From Basidiobolus meristosporus CBS 931.73 (lineage: Eukaryota; Fungi; Basidiobolomycota): a stretch of 64,000 nucleotides of DNA. The stretch is from the NCBI GenBank assembly GCA_002104905.1, contig MCFE01000355.1:23991-87990 (forward strand), read 5' to 3'. Both the position numbers and the translations under genes were made by a program. Positions within the stretch are counted from its first letter, which is position 1. Each line of letters begins with the position of its first letter. Under the pieces are notes generated by a model. The model was not told the origin of the DNA, ran no database searches, and saw only the letters and a program-made list of their open reading frames with translations. Positions 2,828 to 64,000 of this stretch are shown in pieces.

Positions 2828-4072
2828 TCATCTTCTCCTGGGTTTTTTTCTCACAGGGATTACTACTGAAGCATTTGGTAGTGACTCACTTTGCACACCT
2901 ATACTACTTCCTGGCTGACTATCATCTTGGCTACTTGTGTATTTGTAGTCAGTATTTTGCCTCCTAGTTGATGAATGCAATGCTGCAGCTTGGCTGCGCT
3001 GAATTGCTCCGGCTGAACAAACTGAACCAGCCTGTGGTGCCACGTGCTGACGCGTTCTTTTACTTGCCAAGGGCTCCGGTGGTTGAGGCACTTCATGTGG
3101 TCATCATCAGTCAGTTCACCAGAAGTAACTTGCTGATGGTCAGGCAAAACAGCACGCGCAGGCGCGCCTTGACGTGTTGAGATGGCCCTTGGCTGAGTTT
3201 GATGTGATGCTGCAAGTTGACGCAACTTGGTCCGCTCCAATGGACTCGTGTCTAAATGAGCAGTTTGGCAAGTTCTCGTAGTTTTGCTCTGAAGCGCGCG
3301 TTGACCCGACGCGTGTTGACTTGAGGCGTGGCATTCCGGTAAAGGGTGTTGGCGTACTCTGGACTGACGTGCGCCGGCACGCTGTGGTTGCAAGAGATGG
3401 TAGGGAATCCAGCAAGGCGTGCTGGCGCAATCTGGATGATGTTGCTTGCGGTCTGTATTCTTCCTCCTGAAGCTCACCATCTGATTCCTCAAGGTATTCA
3501 CTTACCCTCTGTCTGATACTTTGGAGCTGTTGCCTGGATGAGTCCTGTGTATATTGCTCTTGGAAGCCACTTAGCTCTACTAATATGTCACGTAGTACAT
3601 TAGTCATTTGAGGCAAAAACTCATTCAAAATCTCTTTGGTTCCCAAAGTTGAGGCACCAACGGACGCGTCCGGCCCGTACTGTGCAAATTGCGCGCAAAA
3701 TTGCTCCTGCGTGGCTTCTTTGTCAAATCCCCTCACTCTCAGCTCATTCTTGATTTCAATACTTGTCTTGTTATATATCTTTTTACATACATCGGCTGGC
3801 ATCTTGATGTAGAACTCATGCCACAGCTTTCTACTCAAATTCTTCTATCTTTGTCAACTCTCTGAGGTATCTAGTTCTGCTAGATTAATCAGTAGTGCCC
3901 AAATATCTGTATGAAGGCTCATCATAGACACTTGGGCCATACTAAAATCATTTGGCAAGAACTCAAACAGATCCGACATTGACTTTTCTGGTCCGGACCG
4001 CGCTTGTGAGCTGGGGGATAGGTTTTGTCTGGGTTGTACAAAAGATGAGTTGAGGCTTGGTATGGGGACCAA
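2828..4072 (-). pseudogene. Accessory ORF2 of PHIS copy 1 (Myb/SANT/MADF-like N-terminus, low-complexity tail, C-terminal RKKPRRR), disrupted
   Basis: ORF-track pieces 3854-4072, 3140-3838, 2899-3501 and 2828-3091 join into a homolog of 40720-41982. Contains the DIW...QRWKNL motif typical of Myb/MADF helices, plus stops and frameshifts. Confidence 0.7.
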
Positions 4073-52542: not shown

Positions 52543-55500
52543 CCATCTATGAAAATCCAGCATATCCAAGAATCTTCCTTTGCCTCAAAATCTATCCAGT
52601 CCTTGAGAATGCCTGTCAAAATCCAGATCCCTGACTCCAATCCTGTCTCAGTCCTAGCCCTGGTTGATTCTGGTGCTTCATTCTGTTTTATTGACCAAGC
52701 CTTTGTCCAGAAGCACTCTATTACTGTTACCTTGAAATCCTGTCCAGTCCAAGTAGAAGTTACTGATGGAAGATCACTCTGCTCTGGTGCCATTACCCAT
52801 GAAACATGCGTACTCCAGCTGTCCAGTACTGCACACCAAGAAAGAATTGCCTTCAACATCATCAACTCACCACACTATCCTATTGTGCTTGGAAGCTCAT
52901 GTCTGAGCTAGCACAATCCAAGTATTGATTGGAAATCCAAGATCCTGTCATTCACCAGATCCCACCAAGTCAACTCCATGCAATCTCCAGACCCTGATAA
53001 CTGTGAAAAGACTGTTTCCAACAGTTCAACAGCCCAAGATACCTTGCCAGCTGAAGGAGCCCCCTCAGCAACTATACCAGCCAAGTACCAAGAGTTTGCC
53101 CATGTCTTTGACAAGAAGAAAGCAGAACTCCTCCCTGACCATTGGCCTTATGACTGCCTTATTGACCTTGAAGATGAAAAAGTCCCTCCATTTTGCCCAA
53201 TATAAAACCTCTCCCAGCTGGAGTTGAAAGAACTCCATGGTTATAATCAAGAAAACCTCCAGAAGGGTTTTATTCAGCACTCCAAATCACCTGTTGGAGC
53301 CCCAATCCTCTTTGTCAAGAAGAAGGATGGCACTCTCAGAATGTGTGTGGACTACCATGCGCTGAATAAGATCACAGTCAAGAACCACTACCCCCTGCCC
53401 CTTCTCAACACACTGTTGGATCAGCTATCTGCTGCTCAAGTCTTCACCAGGATAGACTTGAGAGGAGCTTACAATCTTGTCAGAATCAAGCCTGGTGATG
53501 AATAGAAAACTGCCTTTTGCACAAGATATGGTCACTTTGAGTACAAAGTAGTGCCATTTGGCCTCACCAATGCCCCTGCTGTATTTCAACACCTCATGAA
53601 TGACATATTCTGTGAATACCTTGACCAGTTTGTGGTAATCTACCTTGAAGATATTCTCATATACTACAAGAGCCAAGATGAACATGATGAACATGTCAAG
53701 AAAGTATTGAGAAAACTAGACTCTGCTGGTCTCTATGCCAAGCTAGAAAAGTGTGAATTTGCCCAGAGAGAAGTGGAATTTTTTGGTTACCTCATCAGCC
53801 CTGAGGGAACAAGAATGGACCCAAAGAAAGTTGACTCAGTCCAATCCTGGAAAACTCCAAGCTCAGTCAAGGAAGTACAATCCTTCCTGGGATTTGCCAA
53901 CTTCTATTGCAGGTTCATTGCCAACTACTCCAAGATAGTCACCCCTCTGACAAAGCTTACCCAGAAGAACATACCTTTTGCCTGTAATGAGGAGCAATCC
54001 ACCTCATTCAACCAACTCAAGAAATCTTTACTGAAGGCCCCCCTGCTTGCCCACCTGACCTTGAGAAGCAATTCATAGTGGAGACTGATGCTTCTGATTT
54101 TGCCCTTGGTGCTATACTCTCCCAGTATGATGAAGACAATGTGTTGCACCCCATTGCATTCTACTCTCAGAAGTTTTCCCCTGCAGAGATCAACTATGAT
54201 ATCTATGATAAGGAGTTGCTTGCCATCATTGTAGCCTTTGAGCAATGGAGACACTACCTGGATGGTGCAAAACACCAAATCAAAGTCTTCTATGACCATA
54301 AGAACCCTGAGTACTTTGCAACTTCCAAAGTATTAAGCCAGAGACAAGCCAGATGGTCACTCTTCCTGTCCAGCTTTGACTTTACTATCACCTATAGACC
54401 TGGTGCAAAGCAAGGAAAGCCTGATGCCCTGTCCAGAAAAAAGGAATATGCCCTAGAAGAGGGAGATGATGCCTGTTGGCAAATGGGACACCCATTGCTG
54501 AGGAAGAAGCATTTTGAGATTCTTGCCACCCAGTCCTCAAGTCTTGTCATCCCTTCATTCCTAGTAAGGATATCAGAATCCCAAGCCTCTGATATGACTT
54601 CCAGCACCGTCAAGAAATATCTGGAATCCCCAGTTGGGCCCCCTCCCAGGTTCCCAAACATCCATAACCTGCATTTGGTAAACAACCTCATCTACCACAA
54701 GCAGCAGCTTTATGTCCCAGACCCTGCCACCCAGCTAGACATCATTAAGTCTTGGCATGATTCAATGGCTGCAGGCCACTTTAGTACTGCCAAAACCTTG
54801 AATACTATCAAAAGAGATTTCTGGTGGCCTAGAATGATAACTCTTATCAAAGAGTACACTCTGACTTGTGATATTTGCAACCGTGCAAAACCAGCCAGAC
54901 ACCAGCCCTATGGACTTCTTCAGCCCTTGCCTATCCCAGAACACCAATGGAGATCTATATCTGTGGACTTCATTACTGACCTCCCTGAGTCCTGTGGCTT
55001 CAATGCTATACTTGTAGTGGCTGACTGGCTGACCAAGATGGCTCACTTTATCCCTTGCTGTAAGAACACTGATGCAAAAGAAACCGCTGCATTAGTCCTC
55101 AAAAATATTTTCCACCTTCATGGTATCCCCAGTGATAATGTGTCAGATAGTGGCCCACAGTTTGTGTCCAAGTTTTGGAAACACTTCATGCAATACCTTG
55201 GTGTTCAAGTCAATCACTCCACTGCCTACCATCCTCAATCTGATGGCCAGACTGAATGAATCAACCAAATACTGGAGCAATACCTCCAGTGCTATATCAA
55301 TTACCAGCAAGACAATTGGGTAGATCTACTCCCTGTTGCTGAGTTTGCCTACAACAACTCAAGCCATAGTGTAACTGGTTTTACACCATTCTATGCAAAC
55401 TATGGATTCCACCCTCAGTTTGATATCCAGATTCCAACAAACCCAATGAGCCCACATGCGGCTGAACATGCCAAAGCAATCCAGGACATCCAGAATACCC

Positions 55501-56045
55501 TCAAGGAAGAGCTATCCTTAGCTCAGGAAAGCTACAAGAAATTTGCCAATCTAAAGCAGCATCCCACCCCTGATCTTAATGAAGGAAATTCTGTATGGTT
55601 GCTCAGAAGAATTATCAGCACCAACCGCCCTTGTGACAAATTGGATTTCAAGAAACTTGGTCCCTTCAGGATCAAGCAGAAGCTTAGCCCTATAGTATAT
55701 CAGCTACAGTTACCAGCAAGTATGAAAATCCATGATACTTTTCATGTGTCCCTCCTGGAGCCGTATTGCAGGAACACCTTGCCAAACCGGCAAGAAGCAA
55801 AGCCCCAAGCCATCCAGGTTGACCAACATCAAGAATTTGAAGTTAAACAGATTCTAGACTCCAAGTATATCCGGTCAAAGCTGTACTACTTAGTAGACTG
55901 GATTGGTTATGGTCCAAGTGACCAAACATGGGAACCAGCTACCCATCTCACTAATTGTCAAGAACTAGTTACCCATTTCCACCAGCAATATCCTGCAAAA
56001 CCTGCCCCAAAGGGAAACAGAGCTTTGCCTGAAAGAGGAGAATAG
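52498..56045 (+). pseudogene. pol: Gypsy pol (PR LVDSGA, RT YLED, RNase H, integrase HHCC/DDE, chromodomain) with 4 stops and 1 frameshift
   Basis: Stops at 52909, 53203, 53503 and 55257, and a frameshift near 54055. Chromodomain EFEVKQILDSK...YYLVDWIGYGPSDQTWEP. Confidence 0.92.
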
Positions 56046-59163: not shown

Positions 59164-62100
59164 CTATAGATGCTCTGGTTCCATCTCCGCCTCCTCTTCC
59201 GAGTCCTCGGTGCTACTCGCATCTGTATTTTCTTGCAAGATATCTGTTGTTGGTCAGTAAAGTATCCTCAGAAAGTCGACCCGGAAAACCACCACTTTAC
59301 CATGCCATTGATTCTCCCTGAAGGCACATAAGTACCCATCTGCTTGGGTCTTGTCCAGGTGGTTCAAACTGGAGATGCTGTCATCGTCACTTTCATCACT
59401 ATACCCACTAGAGAAGCATACAGTTACCAGGGCGAACAGTCAACCGGTGATACGAAACCACTTACGGGTATGGTGAATAAGACGGCGACCGGTCATTGTT
59501 ACTGGCCGACATCATCCCGGGACTAGAAGTATAGTTCGACCGCATCTCTGTGGCCAAGAGCTCTTCCTCATCGATCACAATCTCTGGGCCGGTGATGATG
59601 GATACTTCTAAAAGGAAAGATTCGGTTTAGCTCAGGGAAAGGTACCAAGAGAGTACTGGGTTTGGTTACTGGATGTCTCATAAGAGGCAAAGCCCATGTT
59701 GTTGCGACGTGCATCTCTTAATCGCTTTTTTTGGACGGCGATCCGTAGAAAGCCTTTGAGTGTGTCCAGGCGAACTTTATCAACAATCTGATCCACTCGC
59801 TCCTTACGCTTGATATAGTCGGTGGGTCTACATTGAGGCAAGGGTTGGTACAAAAGCGACAGGGTCTCAGCATGACTACCAACAACACCTACAGGAAACT
59901 CTTCACGGGGTCTGTCAACTTGTAGATGGACAAAAGCAGGAGCATCTTTGTGAAACTAATCTTCCGACCGTTCACGCCAAGATCCATGGCCTCCTAGCAG
60001 GATATAGAGCTTGTAAGTAATCAGGGCAGCACACATCATATCCACGAGCCAACCTGATAAACCAAGTTATAGATCTGTTTCCTTTGACGAATCTCGGCGG
60101 GATTCAGATTCGTCAACCGGATATTCAACGCAGTCAAGTCAGGAAGCCTCGTCTCCGGACGCCGATCAATCAACTCGATCACGTTTTTGCTAGAGCTGTT
60201 TCGTAGCACTTGCTGGTGCAGTAAGTCAGGCTTCTGCTGAATACAGCAATCGCGTAGCAGTGCCGTCACAGAGTACTCATCGGGGTATATCTTGACGTCG
60301 AATGGGGTGGACAATTTCTGACAGATACAAACTGTTAATAAACCTACACTGGGCAGGAAGCAACCCGGTCTTACCGAAAGAAGCTTCACGATGTCCTTCT
60401 GATATATGTATCCATTCCCGTGAATATCGACCTCGCTCCAAGCTTTCTTGAAGGTAATCAATTGTCAAGGACAGTACAATGGGAGATCGTGGTACTCATC
60501 GAACCGGTAACTGAAAAAGGATATTTTCTGATGTCATCTCTCTTCATTAACGAGTACGACGAGGCGATTTGGTAGCAATAGGAGAATCCGTCCATCACCA
60601 CCACTACGAAGAGGTTGGCGAAGATGTACATGGAGATGACGTTGAAAGAAATGAATAGGAAATATGCCCAGACAGGACTGCCACAGTCAGTCTCGAGGTA
60701 GAATCGAGCGGAGCCAACACACTCGGGTGTTTGGACGACGAAGTCATGCATGAAGCTGTTCCACCCTTCACCAGTGGACATCCCGGCCAGATTTAAGATG
60801 GAATTGGCAAAAGTCCGGAAATTGGCATGGGCACCTCCGTTCTCACCCATCTTGGTCAAGCTGAAGATTTCCATGAACGCTATGGCGTAGATCACGAACA
60901 GCAGGAACCAAACAGCCAAGAGGTTGACAATGGTCCTCAGACTAACACTAGAAGTTTGACAACACGATTCAGCAGGAATGCCAGACGATGTGACGAATAT
61001 GTCATGAGGACTTACAACATGCTGCGCAGAAGTTGGTGCAAGCTGTCCACTTTTTGAACCACCTTGAACAACACAAGGGTGACAAATATCCTTAACGCAA
61101 GGCGAGAGCCATTCGGCGTGTTGAAGATGAACTTCTCAAACAGTTGGGAAACGGTGGAGATTGCCAGGCCGAAAGTGATCACAATATCAAACACATTCCA
61201 GGGATTCATGAGTACCTGGGTAACCGATGCTCAGACAGTATACAGCCACAAAATCAGCGAAAAGGCCTACCAATTTGACGCCCAGGCCTAGACACTTCAC
61301 TCCAATCTCAAATATGTATCCTAGAAAAACCAAACCAAAGAGGATATCTACCCCATGTTAGGTAACGTCGGCTTATACGGGCCGAACTGTCAAAGTACCT
61401 TTTGCCGTGTTCACTGCCTCAGGTTGTCCGTGATACTGGGTCACCAAAAGTAGTGCATCGAATATGGTGACGCCAACCACAAAGCGGAATAGGAACCCGT
61501 TTTTCTCGATGGCCTTCTTGTAGCACCATTGACGTATGGTGTCCCGTGGAGGGTACAGAGGGCGAATCGATGGCTTGATCTGTTTCAACTGATTCTTCAT
61601 GTCAATCCATCTCCGTTGCTCAGCGGTGAGAAACGCAGTTCCATTACGGGTGTTGAAATTCTCGATGATTACCGCAACGAACAGGGTTAGCACAAACACA
61701 GCGCCTACGATGTTGTAAAGCATGAAAAATATGGCATTGTACCACGAATACCGATCCTCAGGCTGTATGTTGTATCCCTTGACTTTCATGGTGGTCAGCA
61801 TGACATCCACCCAGCCTTCGTTGGAGACGATTTCAAACAGCACCAACAACGAGGATCGGAAGCTGTCGAAATTGAAGCCGTCGGGATTGGACCAAACACG
61901 CGGCTTCCACATTTTGATGGTGGCATCGAAGTACAGCCCTTTGCAGTCTCCACGAGTTAGGATATTTGGCGCAGTATCATTACAGCTGTACATAAGGCCA
62001 GCAAAGAGATTCAGGCCGTAGATAGAGAAAGGCAGGATGAAACAAAGGGAAAGCAGGACAGCGTCGATAATACGTGGAAGTCCTGAGTACAACGTGCCAT

Positions 62101-64000
62101 AGAACACCTCTCGTACGGCCGAGAAATAACTAGCAATTCTTAATGCTCTGAACCCTTTGGCCGCCCTTAATGTTCTTGGAATTCCGGTTGGTTCCTTAGG
62201 ATTGATCGCCAAGGTGATGTACAGGGTAATTAAGACTGAAAAATCCACTCGATTCCAAACGCTTTTCCAATAAGCGTCCGGCGTAAACAAGAATCCATCA
62301 GCAATGACACGGATCAAGAACTCCAGGGTGAATATGATCGTTATGATGATGTCCACGATAAAGAACATATCAATATCTCGATGATGAATTGGGATGATTT
62401 CTAGCCGGCCAAATTTCCTAAGCAATCGCTCGCGCTGTGCAAACGGAGTATTCAGCGCAGCAAACACAACGCTGACTATCACGCATATCAGGATGAACCC
62501 GTTGAAAAGGTGACTCCATGTGAAATGGCTGAATGAAAAGGTCTCAATCGAAGGATCTGAATTACCCACAAGCACTTTGCAAAATCTTCGTATCGGATTG
62601 TTCCTCTTGAATATAAAAAGGGATGTATCATACGTAGGGTGTGCCGTCATGAAGTCATTAAGAATTGCTTCGCGTTGGTTATAGTGCTCATTTGAGGTGT
62701 TTCCCTCGTAGGTAGTCCTGTCTAGATTGGAGTCTTCTCTTTCGGTCCCGAACGTGTTGCTGGTGTTATTTCTAGCTTCTGCGTGTTTCTTTTTTCCATG
62801 GAAAAATCTTCGCAGGCGAGCAGTAAATCCCTGTGGGCTCGTTCTCCTTGCTTGATTGTTATCCACCTAGATGAGGAAAGAATTAGCGACGTCCGCTCTA
62901 GCCAACCCAATAGCTAACGTACTTTCGTATTCGATTCTTGTAGAAATTCACGCGCAGCACGCTTTTGGACTGGTAGCACGAGGTTTGAAGGAATGCTGTC
63001 TACCTCCAGCGCCTTTGGACTTGGCTTTAAGTAATAATATGGATTCCATTTACTGAGTTGACATGGCTCGTATAAGTCACAGTTGTCATGGTAAAAGCAG
63101 ATTCACGAAAATGATACCTGATGACATTTTGACTCTCTTGCTGCCTCGTTTCGATCCGCTTCACAGTCTCCTCGAGTTGCATTTTACGCTTTTGCTCCTC
63201 GTCCATTTCAAAATTCTCCACTATCACGGCGACGAACATGTTGAGCAATATAACTAAGCATGGATTAGGTTTCTGGAGAATAATACCACGCCCAGACATA
63301 AATACTCACAATTGGAAAAGCAGAAAAACAGAAGAATAAACACGGAAGAAAAGACCGCCATGTTGTATTGCCGCTGGATACCAGGCAGGCTGAACAGCGT
63401 GTCAGTCCAGTTGTCTCCCGAGAAAATCTAGTACACTCGAAGTGTCATTTGGGAGAAGTCGAGAATTCTTTGTAAATCAAATGCGTACCTGGAAGAGAGC
63501 CAGGAAACTGGCAGCAAAGTTGTCAAAATTCATATACATGTTATCGCTAGATTGTATTTGGCCACCAAATAGCTGCATCGCCTAGTAGAAAAGTTGGATG
63601 TGATTAGCGACTAGTCGATTATTGTAGAATGGAAGAACCTCTTACCACCGTGGCGCTAACCCCGATGCATATGACGATGAAAAGAAACAAATTCATCATG
63701 CCAACAACATTACCCACTGTACGAGCCTGGACAGGAAAGGTAAGTCATACTTGCAGGATCCATCGAGTCTCAGGGAAGACACCTACAATCAATTTTCGAA
63801 TCCGTGGTACACCATCACAATACGATAAACCTCGCTATTTGAAACACCGTGAAGTAGCGATAGAGCATTCCTGAGAAGGCGGTGGGGATTGGGGGTATCT
63901 GGATTATGCAGGTGATCACTGCCAGGAACAGATCCAACCTATTCCTTTTGGAGGAGCAAAATTTACTATGGCGGTCAGGTCGCCGTGTGGCGAAATACCG
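59164..64000 (-). CDS. CCH1: CCH1/NALCN-clade four-domain calcium channel alpha subunit, 3' part (end of domain II through domain IV and C-tail); 5' end outside the window
   Basis: Exons: 63787-64000, 63646-63726, 63489-63581, 63310-63427, 63118-63253, 62923-63052, 61399-62866, 61271-61347, 61016-61215, 60525-60947, 60375-60453, 60054-60317, 59893-59993, 59670-59827, 59466-59607 and ~59336-59407; the last exon is uncertain. Splice phases are consistent from 63786 to 59408. Pore motifs SGDNWT, SNEGWV and TGEGWN. Minus-strand AATAAA near 59088. Confidence 0.92.
60454..60524 (-). other. U12-type AT-AC intron (71 nt, phase 2)
   Basis: 5' splice site ATATCCTTTT, branch site TCCTTGAC 11 nt from the terminal AC. 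Removing it restores DDIRNFKKAWSEVD. Confidence 0.88.

Follow-up and report, generated by a model that had tools for sequence, protein, structure and literature searches.

A very probable U12-type AT-AC intron, shared with Mucoromycota, in a Cch1-type cation channel gene of Basidiobolus meristosporus

The minus strand of a 64,000-nucleotide stretch of DNA from Basidiobolus meristosporus CBS 931.73 (contig MCFE01000355.1; the whole stretch is termed the window here) carries a gene for a Cch1-type four-domain cation channel, the 5' third of which lies beyond the window end. In the part of this gene that follows segment S6 of domain IV (IVS6), a preliminary description of the DNA had proposed an AT-AC intron of the minor, U12-dependent class, and this intron is the subject of our analysis. 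The gene, the two exons that flank the intron, and the intron with its signals are listed below (lengths in nucleotides, nt; snRNA, small nuclear RNA). The start of the upstream exon (60947) was taken from the deposited gene model and converted via the alignment of the window with L006, the CBS 931.73 allele on contig MCFE01000103.1.

59164..64000, minus strand: gene for a Cch1-type four-domain cation channel, represented from domain II as far as its stop codon, located by tblastn of the proteins P0157, P0156, and P0151 and by model mapping
60525..60947, minus strand: upstream exon, encoding S5-pore-S6 of domain IV and the start of the C-terminal tail, ending in ...MKRDDIR + AA (translation and Pfam)
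60454..60524, minus strand: very probable U12-type AT-AC intron, 71 nt, phase 2 (after the second base of an Asn codon)
60516..60524, minus strand: 5' splice site ATATCCTTT, the predicted U11/U6atac recognition sequence, invariant in 8/8 aligned copies
60464..60471, minus strand: branch-point box TCCTTGAC, predicted to pair with U12 snRNA; a YCCTTRAC-type box is present in every copy
60454..60455, minus strand: 3' terminal AC dinucleotide, invariant in the alignment
60375..60453, minus strand: downstream exon, C + FKKAWSEVDIHGNGYIYQKDIVKLLS, an EF-hand-like post-IVS6 segment, followed by a GTAAGA...CAG intron at 60374-60318 (i18 of the L006 model)

The identity of the gene is supported by several comparisons. 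The Pfam family Ion_trans matches three exons in the window, and the full-length models show repeated Ion_trans matches; in the upstream exon the match (1.1e-16) covers profile positions 134-238, which is the S5-S6 half of the domain. When the 497-residue window exon was searched against the full library, a 1812-residue protein of Basidiobolus ranarum was by far the best match. UniRef gives homologs the name 'Calcium-channel protein CCH1'. Among solved structures the closest is NALCN (E 5.5e-115), compared with 5e-91 for Cav2.2. The assignment to CCH1 made in the preliminary description is thus upheld. Two Cch1 paralogs exist in B. meristosporus: the window carries the P0157 copy, for which L006 is the deposited locus, and P0156 is the other, encoded on contig MCFE01000021.1; both contigs belong to assembly GCA_002104905.1.

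Across the intron, the minus strand reads GAC ATC AGA AA/ATATCCTTTTTCAG...CTGTCCTTGACAATTGATTAC/C TTC AAG AAA GCT TGG or, quoted more widely, GAT GAC ATC AGA AA/ATATCCTTTTTCAGTTACC...CATTGTACTGTCCTTGACAATTGATTAC/C TTC AAG AAA GCT TGG. The donor ATATCCTTT agrees with the U12 consensus /RTATCCTT. U12 introns are further recognized by a TCCTTRAC branch box some 10-20 nt before the 3' end and by the lack of a polypyrimidine tract. Here the box is TCCTTGAC, its branch adenosine (60465) lies 11 nt before the final base of the intron (60454), and the box is followed by CAATTGATTAC; there is no polypyrimidine tract. The upstream frame translates to ...SYSLMKRDDIR and the downstream frame starts with FKKAWSEVDIHGNGYIYQKDIVKLLS; the split codon AA+C encodes Asn, and the spliced product is ...MKRDDIR-N-FKKAWSEVD... 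(DDIRNFKKAW at the junction). Donor, branch box, and terminal AC were therefore read exactly where they had been claimed to lie (60524-60454), and the claimed rescue of the frame, together with the R-x-F-x-x-x-W spacing, is borne out by this product.

The predicted protein agrees with those of the closest relatives. The deposited proteins of B. ranarum (P0001) and of the B. meristosporus paralog (P0156) both read ...SLMKRDDIRNFKKAWGEVD..., and the product of AT-AC splicing in the window is identical to them, residue for residue, across the junction. Among the 207 homologs that span the site, 167 align without gaps over the 21 residues around it. We also mapped deposited proteins exactly onto their own loci, using the longer isoform P0151 as the B. 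ranarum model, and found that AT-AC borders are already annotated in the paralog (P0156 intron 20, 72 nt) and in B. ranarum (P0151 intron 20, 70 nt). All 70 other introns of the three genes have GT/GC-AG borders and lengths of 38-201 nt (median 61 nt), as expected from the earlier statement that the remaining introns of this gene are ordinary.

In order to examine the orthologous position in relatives, the two exon edges were located in their loci by tblastn. An AT-AC intron was found at the same codon and in the same phase in 7 other copies, representing six species and three fungal subphyla plus the paralog; their lengths, branch boxes, and distances from the branch adenosine to the 3' end are as follows.

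B. meristosporus, CBS 931.73 allele (L006): 71 nt; branch box as in the window; 11 nt
B. meristosporus, paralog (L007): 72 nt; ATCCTTAAC; 11 nt
B. ranarum (L002): 70 nt; AACCTTAAC; 11 nt
Apophysomyces (L001; Mucorales): 92 nt; ATCCTTAAC; 20 nt
Geosiphon (L003; Glomeromycotina): 73 nt; TTCCTTGAC; 12 nt
Cetraspora (L004; Glomeromycotina): 109 nt; TTCCTTGAC; 19 nt
Diversispora (L005; Glomeromycotina): 121 nt; TTCCTTGAC; 23 nt

A YCCTTRAC box thus lies 11-23 nt from the AC end in all 8 copies, and exactly 11 nt from it in 4/4 Basidiobolus copies. The only invariant columns of the 8-copy alignment are the exon edges, the nine donor bases, and the terminal AC. Between the Basidiobolus copies, the intron interior is 47-48% identical, compared with 81-83% for the neighbouring exon and 100% for the signals. 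Such a pattern would be expected from selection on U12 signals, but not from a coding role of ATATCCTTT or from a branch box of no importance. The U12 class put forward in the preliminary description is therefore supported by every sequence feature that defines it and by conservation of both position and signals across three fungal subphyla, and we conclude that one of the two Cch1-type paralogs of B. meristosporus very probably contains a genuine U12-dependent AT-AC intron.

According to the established model of minor splicing, the U11 small nuclear ribonucleoprotein would pair with the donor ATATCCTTT, and U12 snRNA would pair with TCCTTGAC, leaving the branch adenosine bulged 11 nt upstream of the AC end. 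U4atac/U6atac.U5 would then catalyse the excision of the 71 nt. AGA AA would thereby be joined to C TTC to give ...KRDDIR-N-FKKAWSEVD..., the conserved helix that follows IVS6.

Several points weigh against this assignment. The motif statistics of the single sequence are weak and, taken alone, do not exceed chance: the window has 6 occurrences of RTATCCTT for 5.45 expected, and a permissive composite (a donor followed by a branch box and, within 8-16 nt, by AC/AG) was present in 58 of 300 simulated windows (~19%; about 0.2 expected per window). The intron at 60454..60524 is the sole real composite match in the window, and a relaxed motif scan of the same window did not find a second convincing U12 intron. 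The intron nevertheless rises above chance because its position is precisely the one at which a splice must restore the frame, and because its signals recur at the same codon in the 7 other copies. Secondly, in Apophysomyces, Cetraspora, and Diversispora the branch adenosine is 19-23 nt away from the AC end, which is near the upper limit for U12 introns. Thirdly, that the AT-AC junction is used in RNA is something we infer from sequence. An Rfam scan gave no minor snRNA match in the window, a result that is uninformative for a scope of 64 kb. Finally, the window copy, the paralog, B. ranarum, and Apophysomyces all have GT-AG alternatives that are in frame, so that some cryptic U2 splicing at a low level is possible.

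Two GT-AG pairs compete with the AT-AC junction in the window. Their donors were scored with a position matrix built from 70 donors of the family, the lowest true donor of which scores 1.3 bits.

60447..60511, minus strand: GT-AG pair that keeps the frame, 65 nt, with the product IRKYPFSKAW; judged no more than a cryptic site
60443..60477, minus strand: GT-AG 'intron' of the deposited model (P0157 intron 17), 35 nt; rejected

The alternative that survives best, although we consider it very unlikely, is that the true splice is the weak U2-type pair with donor 60511 and acceptor 60447, the U12-like motifs being coding sequence or chance matches. This pair is in frame and its acceptor is normal (6.2 bits, rank 46 of 70), the deposited Apophysomyces model uses an analogous GTTACC...AG pair, and GT alternatives that are likewise in frame can be found in the B. 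meristosporus paralog and in B. ranarum. However, the donor TCA/GTTACCGGT (60511) scores -0.8 bits, which is under all 70 true U2 donors of the family, and both the sequence and the offset of the alternative GT donor vary between copies. Moreover, IRKYPFSKAW is 2 residues longer than the AT-AC product and loses the conserved [FY]-K spacing in the region where, as noted above, 167/207 homologs are ungapped. Nor would use of this pair account for the retention, in 8 copies with randomised interiors, of a terminal AC and a correctly spaced YCCTTRAC box.

The weak hexamer GTTACC is found 13-16 nt downstream of the AT donor both in the window (60511) and in Apophysomyces (L001, about 7062). More generally, some GT...TTCAAG alternative is in frame in the window copy, the B. 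meristosporus paralog, B. ranarum, and Apophysomyces. The shared hexamer and the in-frame alternatives may be coincidence or may represent a cryptic back-up site.

The deposited model of the gene, P0157, reads through the donor as KYPFSVTGSMSTTISH and removes instead the 35-nt GT-AG intron at 60477-60443. This is the public annotation and it is in frame, but it inserts a 17-residue stretch, KYPFSVTGSMSTTISHS, that has no counterpart among the 207 homologs, including the paralog in the same genome, and that evolves like intron sequence despite being supposedly coding. In addition, none of the 70 other introns of the family is as short as this 35-nt one, whose donor (2.1 bits) and acceptor (1.0 bit) both rank in the bottom ~5% of the 70. 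We find it scarcely credible that the deposited model is right. An equally faint prospect is that the AT-AC intron is removed by the major spliceosome, as in the 'AT-AC II' class of some sodium-channel introns: AT-AC termini alone do not define the spliceosome type, and U2-dependent AT-AC introns are described in passages of the literature (PMC1557818; Wu & Krainer 1997, cited in PMC2831892), but donor positions +3 to +9 are a perfect U12 consensus that scores -4.9 bits on the family U2 matrix, and the end of the intron is preceded, at 11 nt, by a canonical U12 branch box without a polypyrimidine tract, donor and box both being conserved.

With the U12-type AT-AC intron as the preferred structure, the public model of this gene is wrong at the junction, and so are those of several other species, as had been predicted for standard gene finders. 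Models are broken exactly at the junction in Basidiobolus (P0157 and P0158, the latter a second B. ranarum paralog), Apophysomyces (P0007), Geosiphon (P0002), Cetraspora (P0004/P0152), Diversispora (P0013/P0171, two species), and Ambispora (P0160), being truncated, deleted, or read through at the orthologous intron; the DNA behind the models from outside the window was checked for four loci (L001, L003, L004, and L005). For example, P0007 reads DEIR-KYPFIC-KVW, in which K-Y-P-F is the translation of AA/ATATCCTTT, and P0157 reads DDIR-KYPFSVTGSMSTTISHS-WSEVD. All the lineages with broken models are known, or shown here, to keep U12 introns, and their models are damaged at this codon because common gene predictors allow only GT/GC-AG introns.

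The window copy was also compared with the CBS 931.73 allele L006, to which it is 99.29% identical over 5,340 nt (31 mismatches, 4 gaps), so that the two sequences would represent different strains, haplotypes, or assemblies of the species. The differences comprise 11-12 synonymous substitutions, 1 non-synonymous substitution, and ~15 non-coding changes, and the excess of synonymous over non-synonymous differences points to purifying selection on the gene. Two substitutions fall in the intron, at 60500 and 60457, both outside the signals. That the gene might be a pseudogene was considered and is ruled out by the 11-12:1 ratio of synonymous to non-synonymous differences.

Relative to L006, the window has one base fewer at 63826 (TTTT to TTT, residue 550) and at 63809 (GG to G, residue 556), both gaps being coding and frameshifting in this Cch1 paralog, and a third 1-nt gap, at 63735, lies in an intron. 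Because the substitution pattern shows selection on the gene, the gaps at 63826 and 63809 are most likely homopolymer errors of the window assembly.

Elsewhere in the window, the relaxed motif scan returned identical degenerate matches in pairs, at 3775-3824 (+)/41017-40968 (-) and at 7864-7523 (-)/46641-46302 (-), which implies that the window contains repeats, one pair being inverted and the other direct. Long open reading frames at 54078-56045 (+), some 3 kb beyond the 3' end of the channel gene, encode 393 and 199 amino acids, RNase H/integrase-like and chromodomain-like, with strongly negative GC skew at 52-56 kb; they look like a Ty3/gypsy-type retrotransposon.

The distribution of the intron was then considered. 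No intron is present at this codon in Entomortierella (Mortierellomycotina), in which the next, phase-0 intron is present, nor in Catenaria (Blastocladiomycota), nor in Saitoella, the only ascomycete sampled, whose gene is intronless. Selaginella also has no intron at this codon, the nearest one being a GT-AG intron 11 codons downstream. The phase-0 GT-AG intron, located 27 codons downstream of the U12 intron (...KLLS/KLS.PFDVKIY), is common to Basidiobolus and Entomortierella, with the following positions.

Phase-0 GT-AG intron: L010, 6561-6647; L006, 6129-6185; window, 60374-60318, minus strand

Since Entomortierella kept this U2 neighbour, Mortierellomycotina appear to have lost the U12 intron precisely. 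On the simplest reading of these comparisons, the intron would already have been present in the common ancestor of Basidiobolus and Mucoromycota, if not earlier, and later losses would have occurred in Mortierellomycotina and in Dikarya, the latter represented by one ascomycete. The evidence on a still greater age comes from one blastoclad and one plant only.

Minor introns are well documented in this organism. One survey reports 249 of them, 0.554% of its introns and among the highest densities outside Amoebozoa (PMC10639083, Larue & Roy 2023), and another reports 237 (PMC11347168, Olthof et al. 2024); the latter also describes genes for U11, U12, and U6atac, as well as a putative divergent U4atac. 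The working U11/U12 system proposed in the preliminary description agrees with these publications. The intron described here belongs to the same species and to the same class, with consensus signals, as this published set. The paralog intron (P0156 intron 20) is open to annotation-based surveys because it is annotated as AT-AC; the intron of the window copy could not be counted by such surveys because the deposited model lacks it. The minor spliceosome is likewise retained in other early-diverging fungi, namely Rhizophagus irregularis and other Mucoromycota (PMC10639083; PMC2846911), and it is within Mucoromycota that we found the orthologous Cch1 intron, in three Glomeromycotina and one Mucorales species, mostly in mis-predicted models. 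Our literature search found no mention of a minor intron in Cch1 or NALCN.

The preliminary description had also implied a link to the conserved AT-AC introns of animal channel genes, and this link does not hold. A U12 AT-AC site is conserved across animal Nav/Cav genes in S1 of domain I and is absent from NALCN (PMC6259924, Fux et al. 2018), and in rat, introns 2 and 13 of the 44 introns of Cacna1c and intron 3 of Scn5a are minor introns (PMC8767276). The animal Nav/Cav intron resembles the fungal one in occurring in the same four-domain superfamily, in being of the AT-AC U12 subtype with a consensus donor and branch box, and in having been conserved for a very long time. Unlike the animal sites in domain I S1 or in domain II, however, the Basidiobolus intron lies after IVS6 (residue 1577 of 1907 in the paralog), downstream of the last Ion_trans domain, so that its position corresponds neither to domain I S1 nor to Cacna1c intron 13. 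In the 5' parts of the Basidiobolus genes, all introns are of the GT/GC-AG type, and the genes have no second U12 intron. Because none of these animal sites follows IVS6 and the Basidiobolus genes have no second U12 intron, the fungal and animal channel introns share a superfamily and an intron class but are not the same intron.

A broader proposal, which we regard as rather unlikely, is that the post-IVS6 AT-AC intron dates far back in the Cch1/NALCN branch as a minor intron and has persisted there for several hundred million years, independently of the animal domain-I U12 intron. If this were true, four-domain channel genes would have kept minor introns separately in fungi and in animals, hinting that slow minor splicing limits channel dosage and that such introns are more than a frozen accident. 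In a weaker variant, the recurrent in-frame weak GT-AG sites may supply a U2-spliced back-up isoform.

In summary, the intron is an ordinary feature of B. meristosporus, a species already published as rich in minor introns, and it leaves the known range of fungi with a minor spliceosome unchanged; its main value lies in the correction of public gene models. In the public protein, the spurious 17-residue KYPFSVTGSMSTTISHS replaces NFKKA in the helix right after the pore, a net gain of 12 residues, and the same codon is where damage occurs in the Cch1 models of Apophysomyces, Geosiphon, Cetraspora, Diversispora, and Ambispora. Small errors consequently enter the alignments, the structure predictions, and the minor-intron counts drawn from annotation for these fungi. 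The analysis also shows that the fungal channel intron is distinct from the well-known animal channel intron, and it adds one well-supported minor intron that is conserved between Basidiobolus and Mucoromycota and has been lost in Mortierellomycotina and Saitoella.

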